From Geosiphon pyriformis uo1 (Eukaryota; Fungi; Glomeromycota): a stretch of DNA of 64,000 nt. Location of the stretch: NCBI GenBank assembly GCA_016748015.1, contig JAAOMT010000664.1, positions 442,715-506,714 of the forward strand, given 5' to 3'. The notes below the pieces were generated by a model that had not been told where the DNA came from, ran no database searches, and saw only the letters and a list, made by a program, of their open reading frames with translations. The number at the start of each line of letters is the position of its first letter. The first letter of the stretch is position 1. Below, in pieces: positions 23,215-33,345 of the stretch. Both the position numbers and the translations under genes were made by a program.

Positions 23215-24077
23215 GGTTTATAAAAAGATTTTTATACTTCTCCCTATCTGTTTGTCTTCTTTTAGTTTAATGTAGAGAAAGAGGAAAATAGTTTGGTTAA
23301 AAATTTATTGGGAGTCTTGAATTCTTAAATAGGATTATTTCTAAGAGTAAAATAATTTGAATTTTGATAAGTTTTATTAGGCGAATAAATGGATAAGTAG
23401 TTATTAAGACACCACAAATAATAATAAGAGAACGACAAAAAAGGTCAGCAACCCATTAGGGTTATGAAGGAAAAAATAAATTTCGTTCTTTTTAGTGAGA
23501 AAATTCGTGCCCGATTGATTGATAAGGAAAAGAAAAATTAAAAGAAAGACGGAAGGGGTAGGGGAAAGAGAGTTAAAGTTGTTAAAAAAAAAGAATGGTA
23601 TAGTTTGAGAGTGTTTTAATACGTACAAGTAAACACGACGATGCACAAACTTGTTTCTCAGCAAAAAGAAGTTTTTTTATTTAGTATATAATACCGAGGA
23701 TAAATTTTCCGATTTCTATATTTGGAATTTTTGATAAGGTTTTTTTTAAATAAACTGCAAAAACTAAATTCAATCCCTTTTTAGTTAACGGACTTGAAAT
23801 TATTGATGATGATAATGATTATTATTATTATTATTAGTCATACGCGGGCAAAAGTTCCAAGTACATGTAATATTATCCCGAATAATATTAAAAGATCATA
23901 TTTTTGAAATTGGACCAATGTTAAAAGAACTGGCAAAGAGCAAAAATTTCAAGGGTAGCATGTTTTGTATTTCTTCCTAATACACCGCATATTTAGGCTT
24001 TATAGCTCGGAAATATGTATCACTATTATATGGGGCGTGCTGCAACAAAACCAGTGAACATATGACGTCACCCACTC

Positions 24078-25111
24078 ATCTTTTTTTTTCAGCACTAAAA
24101 ATACGATCAATACCGTTATTGTCATAGTTATTAATGAAGTCGGAATCAATCACATTAGTAATATTTGACTTGAATTTCTTTCTCTAATTGTTGCTTAGTT
24201 TGCGCTAATTCTTCTTTCAACTGGTTTAATTTTTTGGTTTTTGTTCTTTTTCCCTCACATCTTCGTGTAGCCCTCTGGATCACGAAGCTTTTCGGCAATC
24301 CGTTCGTTTTCCATAGTACCTACTGGTTGATTGTTTAAGATAGGTTTACCTTCATTTGGTAATCATCATCTTTCCACATTATATTTAGGAAAGAAGTAAA
24401 ACATAGATCACGTTCTTTGCTTGATGGAGTTTCTCCCTTTTCTTGACCTACAAGTTTGCCTGCCTGCCCATAAAAAAGTTATGACAATTTATTTTAGTTT
24501 CATATTTTTCCATTAACTCTGATGATTTCGCCTATTTGTGATCATGTTTCTTGGTCTATATTGCTGATTTCAGGGGACAAGTGTGATTTTGTTAGAATAG
24601 TTGCAAAACCAGGTAATTTATCGTTACGTAATTTAGCAAATACCTTGCTTCGTTCAGCAATAATATTGTCATTATTCGGTGAAAGAGCCTCGTTAATTTC
24701 TTTTTCTTGTTTAGGAGTTGCTGCTTGGTAATGTTCTTTAATTCCTGTGCTTCCTTTGTTTATCACATCATACTTAGGGACAACTCGCATGTAAAAATGT
24801 TGCGGCATATTTTGTCCAAGTTCAGTAGGAATATTGAGTCGATACCCGACTGGATTGTATACTCGTTCTATTTTGGCAATACTATCCTTCAAGACTGGTA
24901 AGATATCGTTTCATTCTTGAGGAGTCATTTCTCTCAAATCCTTCGCATGGCGCTTAGTCATGATGACCGTGTGAGCTTTGGAATTAGGTCTTGGGTTAAC
25001 CCAAGAATAAACAGTTCCAAAATCAGATAGCCAACTTTTAAGTTGCCCTTTTTGCAAAGGTCCGCAGGCTTTTTTGCATGTCATGCATTCTTTCTTTTTT
25101 TCTTCGGACAT
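24078..25111 (-). pseudogene. Bacterial-type tandem HIT-domain protein with coiled coil and C-terminal TM anchor; reads through if TGA=Trp; frameshifted in its 3' half
   Basis: CMTC...AHTVIMTKRHAKDLREMTPQE[TGA=W]NDILPVLKDSI...GQNMPQHFYMRVVPKY is the HIT fold pattern with a degenerate HxHxH. Second repeat GFATILTKSH...DQET[W]SQIGEII...GKLVGQ...FFPKY, then KLNQLKEELAQTKQQLEKE and LLM[W]LIPTSLITMTITVLIVFLVLKKK. Confidence 0.7.
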
Positions 25112-25186
25112 AATAAATAAATTTTTATGTTTTCCTAAACAATTATTAAATCAAAATTGTCCTATCGTTTGTCGTAATCATTTTAC

Positions 25187-26932
25187 TTATTCATTAGTAC
25201 TGCGTACCGATGGCTTTGGGCAAGTGACATCTTTAAATTTATCTCGGACAAAGGGACGAATATGCTGATAAAGGTATTCTTGCCGCTCGTATTTCATAGG
25301 AGGGGCGCTAGAACTGGAAATGATAAGGCCTTGATTTTTTCTATGATTTTTGAAGCTTCAGACTTGCTAATTTTTAAAAGTTTGAATTCCTCGAAAGGAC
25401 CATTAGCGAATTCTTGAGCTTTGACAGGGTTGGCCTTGGTAAAGAGAAAATGTTGAAACTTTTGCAAGCCTCGTAGTTTTTTAAAATAAGTTTCCAGACC
25501 ACTTATGATGTCAAAATATTGAAAACCAGCTCTATCATTATAGCGCCGGGCTTTATTTAGTCTAGCGTTGCTAGACTTTTTTTACCACCTCAACTACATG
25601 ATCGACACAATCTACTGTGGTTTTGCGATAAAGCCTTTTTATCAGTCCGAAACTATCATCACACTTGAATTTAGTATGGCCCGGAACCATGAAACTGAGC
25701 CGAATGCTTTCATAATAACCAGCTATTACCAAGTACAGATAAAACCAAATAGTGGTATTGTTTTTGTTTTGTCCGCCCGCATTGTCACAGGTAACCTTGA
25801 AGTGCTTCTCACCTCTATTCAATTGCTTAATTCCGTCGAAGATTAGGCTAAGCGTACCATTCGGACCTTTTCCAGGAAGTTCGTTCTCGTCAAGAACATA
25901 ATTAATTTGCTCGCGCACCGCTTCATCCTTGCTACCAAACAAATGCACCTTACGAGCACTCAGATAATACACTTTACCGATCTGTTGATCAGAATGAGGC
26001 ACATGGACATTTTGGGCTCAGTCATAACTGTAATGGGCGGTAGCATCAACAGTGCAATGCTGAGCCTTACCGATTGAAATTGAATGATGTTGGTTGACGA
26101 GCTGCCTTTCTGCTATTTTGGTATTTCTGTTATAACAGTTTCGTTCTAACTTGGTTTTGGTGAGATGCTCTTTATATCTCTTTAATAAATCCTGAGTCTC
26201 TTCCTCTTTGCGGGCTTTGAATTGCAAGTCATTCCCAAGTGTTGACAGGTATCGCATAAGTCTGTTCGGGGGCTCATGATTTGGATATTTGGACTTAGCT
26301 GATGCCACAATTTACGGAAGGGATCGTATTTGAGCACACACAAAGCATCGCCTTCTTCTAGGCCGGCTAAAAAATCACGGTGAACGGACTTGTAGCTCAT
26401 TTCTGCAGGTAAAAAGATTATTGATTGGGTAACTCGATTAACATTTCTGACTGGGCTAGGCAACCGTAGACTTCAGCAAAATTCAAGAGAAAATTCTTAA
26501 CCACAGTAGCCACGTTTATATCGATGACCATTTTGGGTTTTCACTGCGGCATTCTCTTTACATTACTGTGGACTCTCGATAGAAGACCATTCTTGAGCAA
26601 GTGATTTCGGATATTTTCAAAATAATTGCGACCAATGCCAAGCATATTGAAATAAGTTTTTTGGCAAATAGCAGTATTACGATTCCAGCAGTAGATAGTT
26701 CTCTTATTGATGCGAGTCTTGTTCTTGAGACGTCGACTAGTATTGATTGCTCCCCCATCCATGGATGGGCCATTAAAAAGATGTCTTGTTCGGACTTGGA
26801 AAGTACTTGAAAGATTTCGCGCAATTCGGCAAACGTTTTTGTAGGAACTTTAGCTGAGCAGCCGCAATCACACCCCACTTCCAAAAGTTGGAGAGGTTTC
26901 TCGTATTCGGTTATATTTTTGTCATTTGTCAT
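25187..26932 (-). pseudogene. DDE-type transposase-like protein (CxC N-terminus, DLCDTC, DNAGGQNKN, GHTKFKCD, ...DVTCPKP), frameshifted, two in-frame TGA
   Basis: ORF pieces 26558-26932, 26541-26762, 26182-26463, 26018-26308, 25571-26002 plus the tail to TAA at 25187 join into ~580 aa. HYSYD[TGA]AQNVHVP and RMPQ[TGA]KPK continue in frame. Confidence 0.75.
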
Positions 26933-26994
26933 ATATATATATATATATTTATACACGGTTGTCTGGTTTTGTAAAAATTTTTATACATAGCATA

Positions 26995-27322
26995 TTAAAA
27001 ACATACAGGATTATCCCTATATACTTCTACTCTTCTGATATCTTTCGGTTCTTGAAAGGCTTCCAATGATGCTCGCTTCTTAAGTTTTTCTTCTGGTTCT
27101 TGACCTTGTTCAGCGTCTTCATGGTAAGAGGCAATTTGGTTTTTGATAAATCTCATAAGTAATCTTTTCTTTATCCAAGTATTCTTTAATAGATTTGGTG
27201 TCAGATACTTTAAAAATATAAGGAGCAATTTTTTCGCCCTGTTCTCTTTTTAAGATGCTTCTGATGATACTGTAATCTTTAGGTTCCATGGTGGATTTGA
27301 TGTAAATTAGTTTCATATTCAT
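26995..27322 (-). pseudogene. Small (~105 aa) charged hypothetical protein, one frameshift
   Basis: 27119-27322 (MNMKLIYIKS...EKITYEIY) joins 26995-27228 (NQIASYHEDAEQ...) by a frameshift. Co-oriented with the two downstream genes. Confidence 0.45.
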
Positions 27323-27783
27323 ATTTTTAATACAGGGATAGTTCTATATCCGTTTACTGATTGTGCCACAATGCATTTCTTTTTCTGCATACTGTACCCC
27401 GTGGCTTAGGAATTTTTTTCCCTTCACAGACTCATTGTTAAATAGCCCTCACCATCTCGAGGACAATCTATGAACCACAACTTACAGCTATATTACTTTG
27501 CTAATGTGGCACTTCAAAATCGGCATTTCAAAACATAGACCTCAGCAACAGTCAACCACTTCTGTCGCCACAATCGGGGCACCTTCAGTCTTGCCTCAGC
27601 TATTACTGCACTGAGTAAGGAAGAATGAAAGAGGGTACCAAACAGTGAGGAGCTTTTATCTATGGTTAGACAGGTATATCGATATGCTAACGACCTTGAA
27701 TATAAGATTTTGATTTTGTCATTGTTGTCAAGCAATTAATTTTTGCTCCATATCTTTAATAGCATACAAAACGTCCAAAAACG

Positions 27784-28460
27784 CTTCATTCTGAAGATGC
27801 ATTAAATTTGCTAAAACTCAAACATCAGTCCTGATATAAGAAACTTTAGGCTTTCGCGAAGATAGTGGCCCAAGCCTTACCTTTTCACAAGCTTCTGACG
27901 ATGAATTCGTATTAAGGGTGAATGAAGTGTTCGATTCAGCCTCTGGCAAACTTTTTGCCAAAGAAAACCTTTGACAAGCAACAAATGGCTGCATTTTCAG
28001 GGCCTGTCGTGTCTAAACTCACTGTAGAAAATGAGCCTACCTTGGCACAGCAAATTGTACAATATCTCAAAAACAAAGCCCTTCATGGATTTCGTCTTTG
28101 CATGTTTGATGGAAACACTGTCGTTCTGAAGGGGATACTTCTACTGGTTGCCATTATTCATCTTTATGCAATCAGGGTTGTCATTTTCTCCATACGTAGA
28201 AAACCAGTTGAAATTTTTCCAGACAGACAGAGGGTGTCATACAGTTGTATTCTTGATTCATCAGGATTTAATATTATCAGTAGGGGAATGATATCCACTT
28301 GAACTGACAGAAAATTGGGTCAAGCAAATAGCTGCAGCATATGTGATTTTTATTTCACCAATAGCCTTTTTGGCTGTAATTATAAGCAAAAGAGACCTGC
28401 AAATTATGCATTAATTGGTGATGACACATTAAAAGATTTGCTGTAATCAGTAATGTGAGT
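27784..28460 (+). pseudogene. Decayed member of a Glomeromycotina-expanded family often annotated as TPR-containing proteins
   Basis: Frameshifted pieces HSEDALNLLKLKHQS*Y, DEFVLRVNE, EPTLAQQIVQYLKNKALHGFRL, DRQRVSYSCIL, VGE*YPLELTENWVKQIAAA. Intron-like gtgagt...ttttcag at ~28455-28491. Family assignment is from recall only. Confidence 0.45.
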
Positions 28461-28499
28461 GTAAATTATTATTATTATTATTTATTTTCAGATGGCTTG

Positions 28500-30960
28500 T
28501 TTACTTTTTACTTTACAAAAAAGAGCATTTTTGAAATGATTATAAGAAAAAAGTAAGACAGAATTTTACACAAAAAAAACTGGACAATTTAAAAAATATA
28601 TATATTAATTAAGTTTCGTTATTTTGAAGTTATGTTGAAGTTTTACTTAAGAGATTTAGTGAAATAATAGATACAAACAACATAAGTGCATTTGGTTTGT
28701 TTATTTGTTTTAGAAAAATAAAAAATCTTAGCAAATATGAAAAAAAATTGTCAAAAAAATATATAATAGTCATTTTAATAAATTTAATCATTATTTTCAA
28801 CATTGGTATTTTAGTTGTTATTCTTTTACAGAATTTTAATTTTACAATTTTAATTAAACAAGATAATAAATGAGATATAATGTTTTTGTTATTATTTTAT
28901 AGTAGATTATTCAAGAAAAACATAACATAACCAAAAAATCTTAAAAAAATCGAATTTTAAAACCAGTTGTAATTTAAATTTAAAAAAATATTTAAAATCT
29001 ATTAGTTCTAAACTTTGTAGTATCAGTATTTCAAAGTTTTAAACTTAACTGTATCAATAAATCTGTTATTAATACTACTAATTATTAAAGCTTATTTATT
29101 ACTTATATTTTATTTTTAATATATTATTATTTATAGAAAAAAAAACACAAAAATAATAAAATAAATAGCCAATAGCAAAATAGAAGATTATCAAAATACA
29201 TAATATCAGAAATTCCAAAAATTGCAAAAATACTGGCAAAAATGCCAAAAATTTCAAAAATGTTAAAAATTTCAGCAATAACTTAAAGAAATTGTAAGAA
29301 TTTTAGAAATTTTATATTATAAAAATTTATATATATATAACAAAAATAATAAAAGTCAAAAAATATTAATTAATTATTTAAGTAAGACAATAAACAAGCT
29401 TACTTTAAAATTAGTTTAATTACTTTTACTGTTATCAACAACTATAAATTAATTAAATTATTTAATAAAATTTTTTATCTTATTTATTAATTAATAAATC
29501 TAAGATCTTCATATTAAAACTTATATTATTATAATATTAATATTATTAATATTATTACTAAAGGTTTTTGGTTTCTTATTTTAAATGTTATAATTGTCAT
29601 TTTGCTGTAAATTCTTATTTATTAAAAGTTGTTAAATCTTTAATAATTGAATTTATCTTTAAATTATTTTTTATAATTTGAATAACTGAACTTATAAATA
29701 CTTTAAAATTAGTTTAGTCTTTTATTATTATTTTAATTAAGCTATAACTAATTTAATAAACATATTTATTAAAATTTTATTTAAAACTATTAAAATTTCA
29801 ACATTGTTTATATTGATATTATTAGTATTAATTATATTAATTTAATAATATTAAAACAATAATTTTTAATTATGGTTATTAACAAAATATTAATTTTTAT
29901 TTTTTTTTGTTTTACTAATTAATTAAAAAAAAAGCACTAAGATTATAATATCAAAAATTGCTTAATAAAAAATATTAAAAAAAAACATTATTATAGATAA
30001 ACTTAGTAAAATATAATCATAATGTTTAATATTTATGATTTAATATCAAAAACAGTATAAGAAATAAATAAATTGGCTTTAGTTGTATTGTAAATTATCA
30101 GTTTTTAAAAAAATTTTTGTTTGAAGTTTTACTTATTGAGTTTTTTTATTATAAAACACAAAGATATTGTTTCTTTAATTGTATTGTTATAATTGTATTT
30201 TTTTGAGCTAATAAATACAATTATTATGATTTAATATTGTCTTTTTACTCTTTTGATAAACTAATAAGATAAAATTAATATTTAAACTTAAAAAAAGCTT
30301 CTTTTTTTTATTAGACTATTACAAAATTTATTCTCAGATAGTTAATTTTTAATGTTGTTACTTTACAAAAAAAAAGAAAAAAATAAAATAAATAAAATAA
30401 AATAAAATAAAAAACAAAAAAAAAAAATTTAATATTTTATTAATTACTGTGATCAAAAGCAATTAATTTAAGTTATTAAGATTTTAAAAATATTTATGTT
30501 AAAAGTATTTGACTTAAAACAAAAATAAGAAAAAATGGTTAATCAAATTTTAACAATTTAGAGAATTTGGTTTATTAATTTGTAAATTAGACAATAAGAT
30601 TTTATTTAGTAAATTTGAAATATAAAAAATAAAGAAATAAAGAAATTTTTAAAACTAAAGGCAAAATAAAAATAGTTATTAGATTTTTGTATTGTATTTT
30701 TTGTATTTTTTATTTGTTAAGACTATTTATTTTTATATATATTTTTTAGTTTTATAAAATTGTTTTTAATTGCTTATTATTATTAATTATTACTTGTTAT
30801 TTTAACTATTGTTTTATTTTTTTATATTATAATTAGTTATTTATGTTCTTATTAGTTATTTTGTGCTATTTTATATTATTGTATATTATTGTATATTATT
30901 TTGTATTCTTTTATATTATTCTGTAATATCTTGTGTTATCTTATATTATCATGTTTTTTT
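28500..30960. other. Extremely AT-rich decayed DNA, probably ancient hypermutated repeats
   Basis: Very few G/C and essentially no CpG. Faint LTR-like relic at ~29160-29340 (AGCCAAT, aaattcc/aaattgc repeats, TATATATA). Confidence 0.55.
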
Positions 30961-30962
30961 CA

Positions 30963-32504
30963 TTTTTTTTTTATTAAATTTAACAAGTATAATCCAACTA
31001 CTATCTAGTATTTTAGAACAAATTAAATATTCTAAACTAAGTATAATTCATGTGCTTTTTACATGTAATCAGTTACTCAAACCAGTTCAAATTATACTAA
31101 GTTGATACAACAGAAGAAAACTTACTTAAAGATAATATCTTTTGAATAATATTAAATAAAGTAATATTACAAGAGACCAATTTAACCAGTTATTTAGCTG
31201 TTTTTAAAAAATTAGTTTTAACACTAACAGGCTCATATGTTCAAAAGAGCATCAAATTAGAAAACACATTATTATCTACTTTAATTAAATGTTTTAAATC
31301 ACCAGACATATTAATATAATTTATATAACACTTTTTTTTTAAAAAAACCACTTTTTTTTTAACTTATTAACAACTTTGCTAAAAAAAATCTAGATGAATC
31401 ATAAGCTCAATAACCTTTAAATTAAAAACACTGCTTGAGATAAAATTACTCTTAATAAAGTATTTAAATACAATAACCAATACATCAACAGATTTAATAA
31501 TTAATCCAATTAAAATTAATAATTTAACCAAATCAGATTTCAGAAACACTAACCAAAAAGAAAACAAAGAATTACAAATAGCTACAAAAAGAGAAGCAAA
31601 ACCTGTCAAAGGAAAAAACTCAGAAGAATCAGAATGAGCAGAAACTTTAACATAAGAAGTATTATTCACAAAACATGAATTAAACATCTTGGGAGCCATA
31701 AAAAGAGAAAGCAAAAAAACTGTACAGTTTGCAGCCAAATAGTTCATTTCTTGACATCTAAAACAGTGCTAATAACCAGAAATTTTCTATCAAATACAGC
31801 ATTTTCTTAGTGTACTAGTCTTAATAACTACAGAATTAAATCAACTTAAGAGCCAAATGTAATTAGAACAAACTGAAAATAATAATTAGAATTAGGTAAA
31901 CAAGAAATAAAACAAGTCTGATTACCAACTTGAAAAACTATATCACTAATTTCAAAAGCAGTACAACCAAAAAAAAGATTAACCAACTTGGCCCTAAATT
32001 TATTACAAGACAAAATAGTCTTTTTTTAATTCACAAAAAAAAAAATCTGAATGCTATCTTTGTTTACCAACACTAATCAGTGGTTGAGAGCCAATACAGC
32101 AGTATTTAATCCATTAAAATAAACAACTACATATTGCCAAACACTAACAGACTTTAATACAACACAAAAAACTTTACTAAAAACACTAAAAACTAATTTA
32201 ATATTGGCAGCAGATACACCTAAAAATACATTATGTAGTACAATAGCAGCAAGAGAAGAACTAGACTCAAAAACTATCAAAAACTTAGTAATTTTAAGAA
32301 TGACAAAACAAACAGAGCTTGTAAGCTTAACCAAAAATATAGTATTCAAAGAATTTTAGGAAGCAAATTCCATATATAAAAAAACTTCATATTGTCTTTT
32401 AACACTGACTTTGCATCTAAAAAACCATGTACAGACCAAAAAACAGCTCTAACATAAGCCAATTTGATTTTGAAAATATTATTAGATATTAAAGTAGAGA
32501 CCAC
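30963..32504 (-). mobile_element. ORF1-only non-LTR element copy 2, 3' part (ORF1 C-half, 3' UTR, poly-A)
   Basis: ORFs 32077-32349 (...VWQYVVVYFNGLNTAVLALNH) and 31379-31747 match copy 1. 3' UTR TTGAACTGGTTTGAGTAACTG...ATACTTGTTAAAT plus A-run matches 11935-12076. Confidence 0.75.
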
Positions 32505-33345
32505 TATTACAGATAATTATTTGGGGTTTTAAATCAAATAACAAATCTGTAACTTAGTGCTAATTTGCTTTGATGATGTTGGTAATATCCATAAGTTGTT
32601 TTTATCTGAAGGTTTTGGTTGAATTCTTTGTATAATAGATAGAGATTCAATAGTTGTTTTGTCAGTAATCTCTCAGAATTGCAATTTCATCAAATTTTTT
32701 TTAATGTAATAACCAGTAATCCTCCTGGTAAGCTATCCTCAATTGAGTGTTCTACCCTTATTTTCAGGTCTTTTACCAGTCACTTTGACATCAATAACTT
32801 TGCACATTGATTCTTTAATCAGTTAGTAATGACAACAAAATAAAAGAAAATAAAAAAAATAAAAAAATAAAGCAATTTAAGCCAAGGTGAGTAACTTAAT
32901 ATCTTGTCAATAACCATGATTAAGAGCTATTGTTCCAGTATGGTCAAGTATGGATTACTATTAACATAAAGTATTGATAGTAGTGAATAGATTGAGATAG
33001 TAAATAGTTATTTATTGATATTTGTAATTTGGAAGATTGCTTAGATGAAATCTAAATTGCAAGATCTGTTTTTTCTATTTCTAATGCTACTGCTATATAT
33101 ACATAATCGAGATTCTTCAATTCCTCAATTCTTTACTTCAGAAATTCTGAAATTTTTGGAATCTTGCAATTTTTTTAAGAAGAATTCTGGAATTCTGCAA
33201 TTCTGCAATTCTTTGTACAAGAATTTTGAAATTCTTAGAATCCTACAATTTCTTTAAGAGGAATCTTGAAATTCCACATTTATTATGGTTATTTCTAATT
33301 GGCTAATTTATATGCTAATATATTTTTTATATTCTAAGAGTAATA
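32505..33345 (-). repeat. 3' LTR of copy C
   Basis: Mutated termini TATTAC...GAGTAATA. Similar to 62107-62823. Followed on the right by PPT and ORF3 tail. Confidence 0.88.

Follow-up and report, generated by a model that had tools for sequence, protein, structure and literature searches.

How do three closely packed genes that read through only if TGA stands for Trp come to lie in a fungal chromosome? The question is raised by a window of 64,000 nucleotides from Geosiphon pyriformis uo1 (assembly GCA_016748015.1, contig JAAOMT010000664.1, positions 442,715 to 506,714), the whole stretch of DNA that was analyzed. An island of about 3.3 kb in the region 24075-27350 holds three intronless genes on the minus strand. 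A preliminary description of the window, made from its letters, took this island for an operon that had been transferred from a Mollicutes-related endobacterium (MRE), inactivated on arrival by the difference in code, and eroded thereafter by small indels. The gene coordinates and the spacers of 62 bp and 75 bp given there agree with ours, and the reading of TGA as Trp is indeed required by the open frames, by a codon census of the family, and by substitution rates. The supposed operon, however, is a dead member of a transposon family that ends in terminal inverted repeats (TIRs) and encodes a DUF7869 transposase. The earlier interpretation as a whole is partly supported.

The in-frame TGA codons of the island are genuine; all seven that had been listed (Table 1) are TGA on the minus strand. 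Those at 26018 and 26541 fall on two of the five Trp sites that are conserved in the transposases of the family, and alignments with relatives place the double TGA at 24366/24363 and the TGA at 24150 at TGA codons of intact homologues of the cargo gene, L057 and L068 (copies and contigs of the family are numbered with the prefix L). The homologue in L057 (C669:922825-925854) has at least 370 codons, with 12 TGA and 0 TGG; in it, as in the soil contig L068, the double TGA is preserved, and so is the TGA ahead of the hydrophobic tail. The statement that comparable premature TAG or TAA codons are missing holds for the aligned transposase segments of the window copy, where neither occurs. Decay by small indels is likewise borne out, with at least five frameshifts between the six frame segments of the window transposase.

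Comparison of copies carries the argument for TGA as a sense codon. Several copies have transposase frames of 530-612 codons that are broken by TGA alone; under the standard code no transposase frame exceeds 280 codons. (Frames of 1036-1163 codons were rejected as artefacts of N runs, which lie within the transposase regions of L006, L015, L021, L026, L040, and L044-L046 and give rise to false long frames in six-frame searches.) At the five conserved Trp sites, about 25 copies together have TGA 71 times, TGG 49 times, TAA twice, and TAG once, and every one of the sites alternates between TGA and TGG from copy to copy; chance would not produce so great an excess. Trp is present at sites 212 and 310 in all Glomeromycotina relatives compared and in many metagenome relatives, and at site 401 in only part of the relatives; sites 85 and 133 are not Trp outside the family. 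No fixed base follows the TGA codons on their 3' side. The DNA of intact copies diverges by 17-31%, with pairwise ratios of nonsynonymous to synonymous substitution (dN/dS) of 0.08-0.15 at dS >1 in subfamily A and 0.25 in a subfamily B pair of 92% identity. The cargo genes are still more one-sided, with TGA to TGG counts of 12 to 0, 8 to 2, and 6 to 0. Because dN/dS among intact copies is 0.08-0.15 at dS >1, TGA has been a sense codon for Trp in this family during long purifying selection.

The Geosiphon assembly (128 Mb, 792 contigs), whose proteins match database entries named Geosiphon pyriformis at 77-100% identity, contains the family in quantity. A 3.4-kb query returned at least 60 matches, 68-81% identical to the window and spread over many large contigs, and the family numbers at least 40 to 60 copies; DUF7869 matches lie at 35 places in the genome, with TGA inside most. 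Homology among copies ends sharply at 27349, and the 210-bp block that leads up to this point is found again, inverted, at the opposite end of other copies. In complete copies (L042, 3.8 kb; L043, 1.6 kb; L045, 5.8 kb; L046, 5.2 kb) the inverted ends extend farther outward than this block, measure about 0.2-0.4 kb, and terminate in a shared motif of about 45 bp. This motif directly follows the HIT-like gene in the window and a different cargo gene in L003. Within the window alone no clear inverted repeats were found, the ends becoming visible only through comparison of copies. The ends abut AT-rich palindromic ATAT/TATA, from which a target-site duplication of 2 or 4 bp is indistinguishable. 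The shared inverted ends, long and composite, place the family among the cut-and-paste DNA transposons. The copy in L043 (C787:141000-144400) consists of hardly more than two near-perfect inverted ends; it is a short non-autonomous derivative, which suggests recent mobilization in trans.

The transposase itself matches DUF7869 (PF25273) with 52.6 bits against a Pfam cut-off of 26, over window positions 25571-26002, and has the conserved motifs YDWAQ and CDN..GQNKN. It is a predicted DDE-type transposase of eukaryotic kind; a profile search of the PDB gave no link to a solved transposase structure. At least two deep subfamilies exist, with varied cargo of several kilobases.

The cargo genes vary between copies and specify proteins of HIT-like, HAD-like, or coiled-coil type; TGA is abundant in every one of these genes. 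In the product encoded in the window, a Cys cluster at the N-terminus and a hydrophobic tail at the C-terminus enclose a weak HIT-like core and a coiled coil. Its score for the HIT family PF01230 (16.2 bits) lies below the Pfam cut-off of 21.5, and of the HxHxHxx motif the first His alone is kept (HFYMRVV in the window, HFYMW in the intact copy). The small gene at the other end of the island has zero Trp codons and, in intact copies, a basic C-terminal tail of RKKRK type; it has 628 relatives across metagenomes and Geosiphon and matched no Pfam family.

Table 1. Features of the element and its neighborhood, in window coordinates.
Feature	Position	Strand	Remarks
Outer terminal motif	24032-24075		Left end of element, 3' end in gene orientation; small internal deletion; aligns with outermost inverted-repeat motif of L043, L045, and L042 and with 3' end of L003
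HIT-like cargo gene, frameshifted	24080-25111	-	TGA at 24911, 24542, 24366, 24363, and 24150
Spliced antisense transcripts	24203-27139	+	13 GT..AG joints; all exons closed in the three + frames
DUF7869 transposase pseudogene	25187-26932	-	6 frame segments; TGA at Trp sites 26541 and 26018, TGG at three others
Internal partial copy of terminal motif (ACAAAACCAGACAA core)	26950-26990	-	Immediately upstream of transposase start; likewise in L002, L003, and L004 by alignment
Small open reading frame	26995-27322	-	About 105 amino acids when intact; about the first 60 codons intact in window
Inner block of long inverted repeat	27135-27349		Holds start of small open reading frame; inverted at far end of complete copies
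Standard-code neighbor module	27413-28732	+	Decayed homologue of 231-amino-acid gene and start of next gene; colinear with L061 and L091

Relatives that share the habit of writing Trp as TGA are found well beyond Geosiphon. Contig L036 of Ambispora leptoticha contains the family, with seven TGA and no TGG in two transposase frames. A first metagenome alignment was too diverse to yield search patterns; a scan of JGI metagenomes gave 80 soil contigs at 63-94% identity in protein; most of them are intact across some 575 codons, and their Trp sites are TGA 182 times, TGG 109 times, TAG four times, and TAA once. On a further soil contig, L033 (7.3 kb), all genes read with TGA as Trp, including a gene of 796 codons with a Lon_C domain and eight TGA. 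Among named relatives of full length, nuclear DUF7869 genes of Rhizophagus come closest, with 39% identity. These genes and those of Gigaspora belong to the same protein family and, as exemplified by GLOIN_2v1484099 of Rhizophagus, are intronless and have Trp at sites 212 and 310. The Rhizophagus gene, however, uses TGG and the standard code, whereas the clade of Geosiphon, Ambispora, and the soil contigs uses TGA for most Trp.

The DNA of the island is integrated in a fungal nuclear chromosome, as the preliminary description had claimed while allowing for a chimeric assembly. Contigs of a DNA run tile 23300-28000 without mismatch, although this run may be the assembly's own source and hence not independent; one contig (23847-24442) bridges the left end, and depth in the same run is about 70 in flank and island alike. 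Two other runs, one of them from a different study, show 13 GT..AG joints on the plus strand between 24301 and 26504, some of them alternative. Spliced RNA from the locus implies that it is transcribed and spliced by the fungus, and that the locus is therefore nuclear. Transcription is antisense to the three TGA-written genes and sense for the standard-code neighbor. Each antisense exon, checked singly and unjoined, is closed in all three frames, and these antisense transcripts, which pass through all of the TGA-written module, resemble a non-coding RNA limited to the element. At the dead copy in the window the RNA seen was antisense throughout, by contigs that cannot show the absence of sense RNA.

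The preliminary description had also noted that CpG is retained in the island, unlike in the flanking transposable elements. The contrast is real, the observed/expected ratio of CpG being 0.87 in the island, 0.16 in the neighboring gypsy element, and 0.33 in the whole window. As a marker of origin CpG was nevertheless dropped, with ratios of 0.81 in transposases, 0.28-0.38 in other TGA-bearing open reading frames (ORFs), and 0.71 in standard-code ORFs.

The border that had been drawn at 27350 does not stand: the element runs on into a standard-code, intron-bearing gene. RNA contigs show a spliced intron of 89 nt at 27672-27760 in this neighbor. What had been called a pseudogene at 27784-28460 derives by decay from a gene for 231 amino acids in which Trp is always TGG. 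Because soil contigs L061 and L091 run colinear with window positions 25208-28732, the pseudogene counts as part of one composite element with the transposase. The stretch that immediately follows, 28733-33000, is extremely AT-rich (GC 13-24%), with a CpG ratio of 0.03. The coexistence of two ways of writing Trp was surveyed in the long non-transposase ORFs of 81 metagenome contigs (the 80 soil contigs and L033). An all-TGG class comprises 24 ORFs with 0 TGA and 124 TGG, and a mostly-TGA class 63 ORFs with 305 TGA and 98 TGG; a third group of 15 ORFs with a single TGA each (51 TGG) fits neither class cleanly. Spurious antisense frames may account for part of the TGA-bearing ORFs. One standard-code ORF (L061:3-911 and L091:2-799), on the same contigs as a TGA-written transposase, ends in a Cys-rich zinc-finger region followed by the motif RGRD.NA..NI; by eye, this putative terminal region resembles the RuvC end of TnpB/Fanzor nucleases.

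If TGA is a sense codon, something must decode it. Two tRNA-Trp genes are present in the host nuclear assembly; each has the anticodon CCA, on an anticodon stem of the normal 5 bp. No tRNA-Trp with a UCA anticodon was found in the host assembly with a pattern that presumes a canonical T-loop, whose matches were at chance level and none a tRNA. The window contains no tRNA, and 76 family loci contain no tRNA-Trp or suppressor tRNA, their sole tRNA being a tRNA-Gly beside L012. Four small-subunit (SSU) rRNA matches in the assembly score 393-536 bits over about 1.8 kb; from these scores alone, which are far below those expected for a bacterial 16S rRNA, they are read as non-bacterial.

The best explanation, to which we give a probability of about one half, is translation in endobacteria, with the nuclear copies as landings. 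The element's own genes, for a small basic protein, a predicted DDE-type DUF7869 transposase, and cargo (here a HIT-like membrane-anchored protein), have long been evolving under a reading of UGA as Trp, and fungal cytosolic ribosomes would be expected to stop at each TGA. The site of translation would most likely be MRE, as users of code 4 that live free in the fungal cytoplasm. Nuclear copies would be landings of an element whose proteins are made by the bacterium, and the window copy would since have suffered frameshifts and the loss of part of one end. The data demonstrate the family, its inverted ends, its integration in the nucleus, and TGA as a sense codon under selection; where translation takes place and which way the element travels are inferred. 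MRE use the TGA=Trp code family, carry many mobile elements, and hold host-derived genes, and transposases make up 1-8% of their non-orphan genes (PMC4916391, PMC5982333). Of the three marks of MRE DNA that were checked, the element displays one, the use of UGA as a Trp codon, and a bacterial home is without direct support. Several observations weigh against it. The transposase is of eukaryotic type, the intron-bearing standard-code passenger genes fit nuclear life, and copies of subfamily B are 92-98% alike, as after bursts within one genome; the RKKRK-type tail of the small protein looks, by eye, like a nuclear localization signal. Shared-word and pattern searches, in which about a quarter of the proteins were named and Mollicutes genomes were not addressed directly, gave no Mollicutes- or MRE-named homologue of the transposase, the small protein, or the HAD-like cargo. 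Among 185,579 genomes of bacterial and archaeal species, a scan by pattern gave two distant matches only, both on contigs of metagenome-assembled genomes outside the Mollicutes. No contig joins the element to a bacterial housekeeping gene, tRNA, or rRNA, nor, apart from the tRNA-Gly already mentioned, was any found beside the copies; on these points the check on MRE origin went against the preliminary description.

Much of this would be expected if the transposon were purely nuclear and the fungus read UGA as Trp in its own cytosol, by an undetected suppressor tRNA, UGA-to-UGG RNA editing, or efficient programmed readthrough, with TGA serving as a lock on transposase expression. A eukaryotic-type transposase with inverted ends, spliced standard-code passengers, bursts of near-identical copies, and the failure of searches to find a bacterial copy all favor such a reading, and in Fusarium and Neurospora A-to-I editing that corrects stop codons is known. 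Cytosolic decoding would nevertheless be without a visible agent, because CCA is the sole anticodon among the host's tRNA-Trp genes, whose anticodon stem is normal, and no copy has a suppressor tRNA. Leaky readthrough is inadequate for genes with 12 TGA and for cargo in which nearly all Trp is TGA; all-TGG and mostly-TGA gene classes occur within one contig, no constant base follows TGA, and the RNA seen at the dead copy is antisense only. We consider cytosolic reading possible but doubtful. An unlikely, though not remote, possibility is a shuttle element, whose transposase and cargo would be translated only in code-4 endobacteria, whose standard-code passengers and Trp-free small protein would be expressed by the fungus, and which would move, with genes aboard, between bacterial and nuclear genomes. 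The passage of a single stretch of endobacterial chromosome to the nucleus, dead on arrival in the manner of nuclear mitochondrial DNA segments (NUMTs), would account for code-4 translation, tight gene spacing, lack of introns, and retained CpG. It is contradicted by at least 40 to 60 copies with common inverted ends, sits poorly with a eukaryotic-type transposase and with the lack of any MRE homologue or housekeeping neighbor in our searches, and is very improbable. Fungal mitochondria also read UGA as Trp, and the family might reside in mitochondrial DNA or plasmids, with NUMT-like nuclear copies; but two or more deep subfamilies with multi-kilobase cargo are too diverse for one small mitochondrial genome, and all copies were seen on contigs of nuclear size or on short metagenome contigs, which makes this scarcely plausible. 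Practically negligible is the chance that these are ordinary dead nuclear transposons in which a biased G-to-A process has turned TGG into TGA. That change is a single transition, and the preliminary description, which had seen it in the neighboring pseudogene, raised it as a caveat. Biased decay of TGG cannot explain the pattern, however, because TAG, also one G-to-A step from TGG, is 70 times rarer (71 to 1 at the Trp sites). Frames of about 600 codons stay open at 20-30% nucleotide divergence and dN/dS of about 0.1, with TGA and TGG alternating at the same sites, and the same TGA sites recur in Ambispora and the 80 soil contigs.

The family can be set beside several known systems. NUMTs and Wolbachia-to-host transfers are likewise foreign-code DNA, untranslatable in a nuclear chromosome and decaying there. 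They are random chromosome fragments, whereas the window family has many copies, inverted ends, a eukaryote-type transposase, and no known donor genome. Another parallel is offered by the stop-codon-recoded phages of standard-code bacteria, mobile elements that, like the window family, use the host's stop as a sense codon. Many recoded phages bring their own suppressor tRNA, but none lies in or beside any copy of the family. If the endobacterial explanation holds, proteins made by a bacterium would act on DNA that ends in a eukaryotic nucleus, as in Agrobacterium T-DNA transfer; the likeness would be one of analogy only, with no secretion system, border nicking, or relaxase involved. A further comparison is with the host-derived genes and abundant mobile elements of MRE (Naito 2015 and Torres-Cortes 2015, as cited in PMC5982333 and PMC4916391), which show that DNA passes between fungi and code-4 endobacteria and that many mobile elements are tolerated there. 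The published transfer runs from fungus to bacterium, and the window element was not found among MRE-named database proteins.

A transposon family kept by selection in a code that the resident genome cannot read has no counterpart that we could find in the literature searched, nor did we meet there any report of transposons written with TGA in these fungi. Either endobacteria are home to a transposon of eukaryotic type that lands repeatedly in the host nucleus, or these fungi can by some hidden means read UGA as Trp in a particular class of genes. The former would make gene traffic between symbiont and host in mycorrhizal fungi directly testable. The family is also common in soil metagenomes, where gene callers that assume the standard code fragment its genes, so that it matters for annotation. 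The shuttle, if true, would be a natural vehicle for DNA from bacterium to nucleus in an ancient plant-symbiotic fungal lineage, and one that is widespread in soils.

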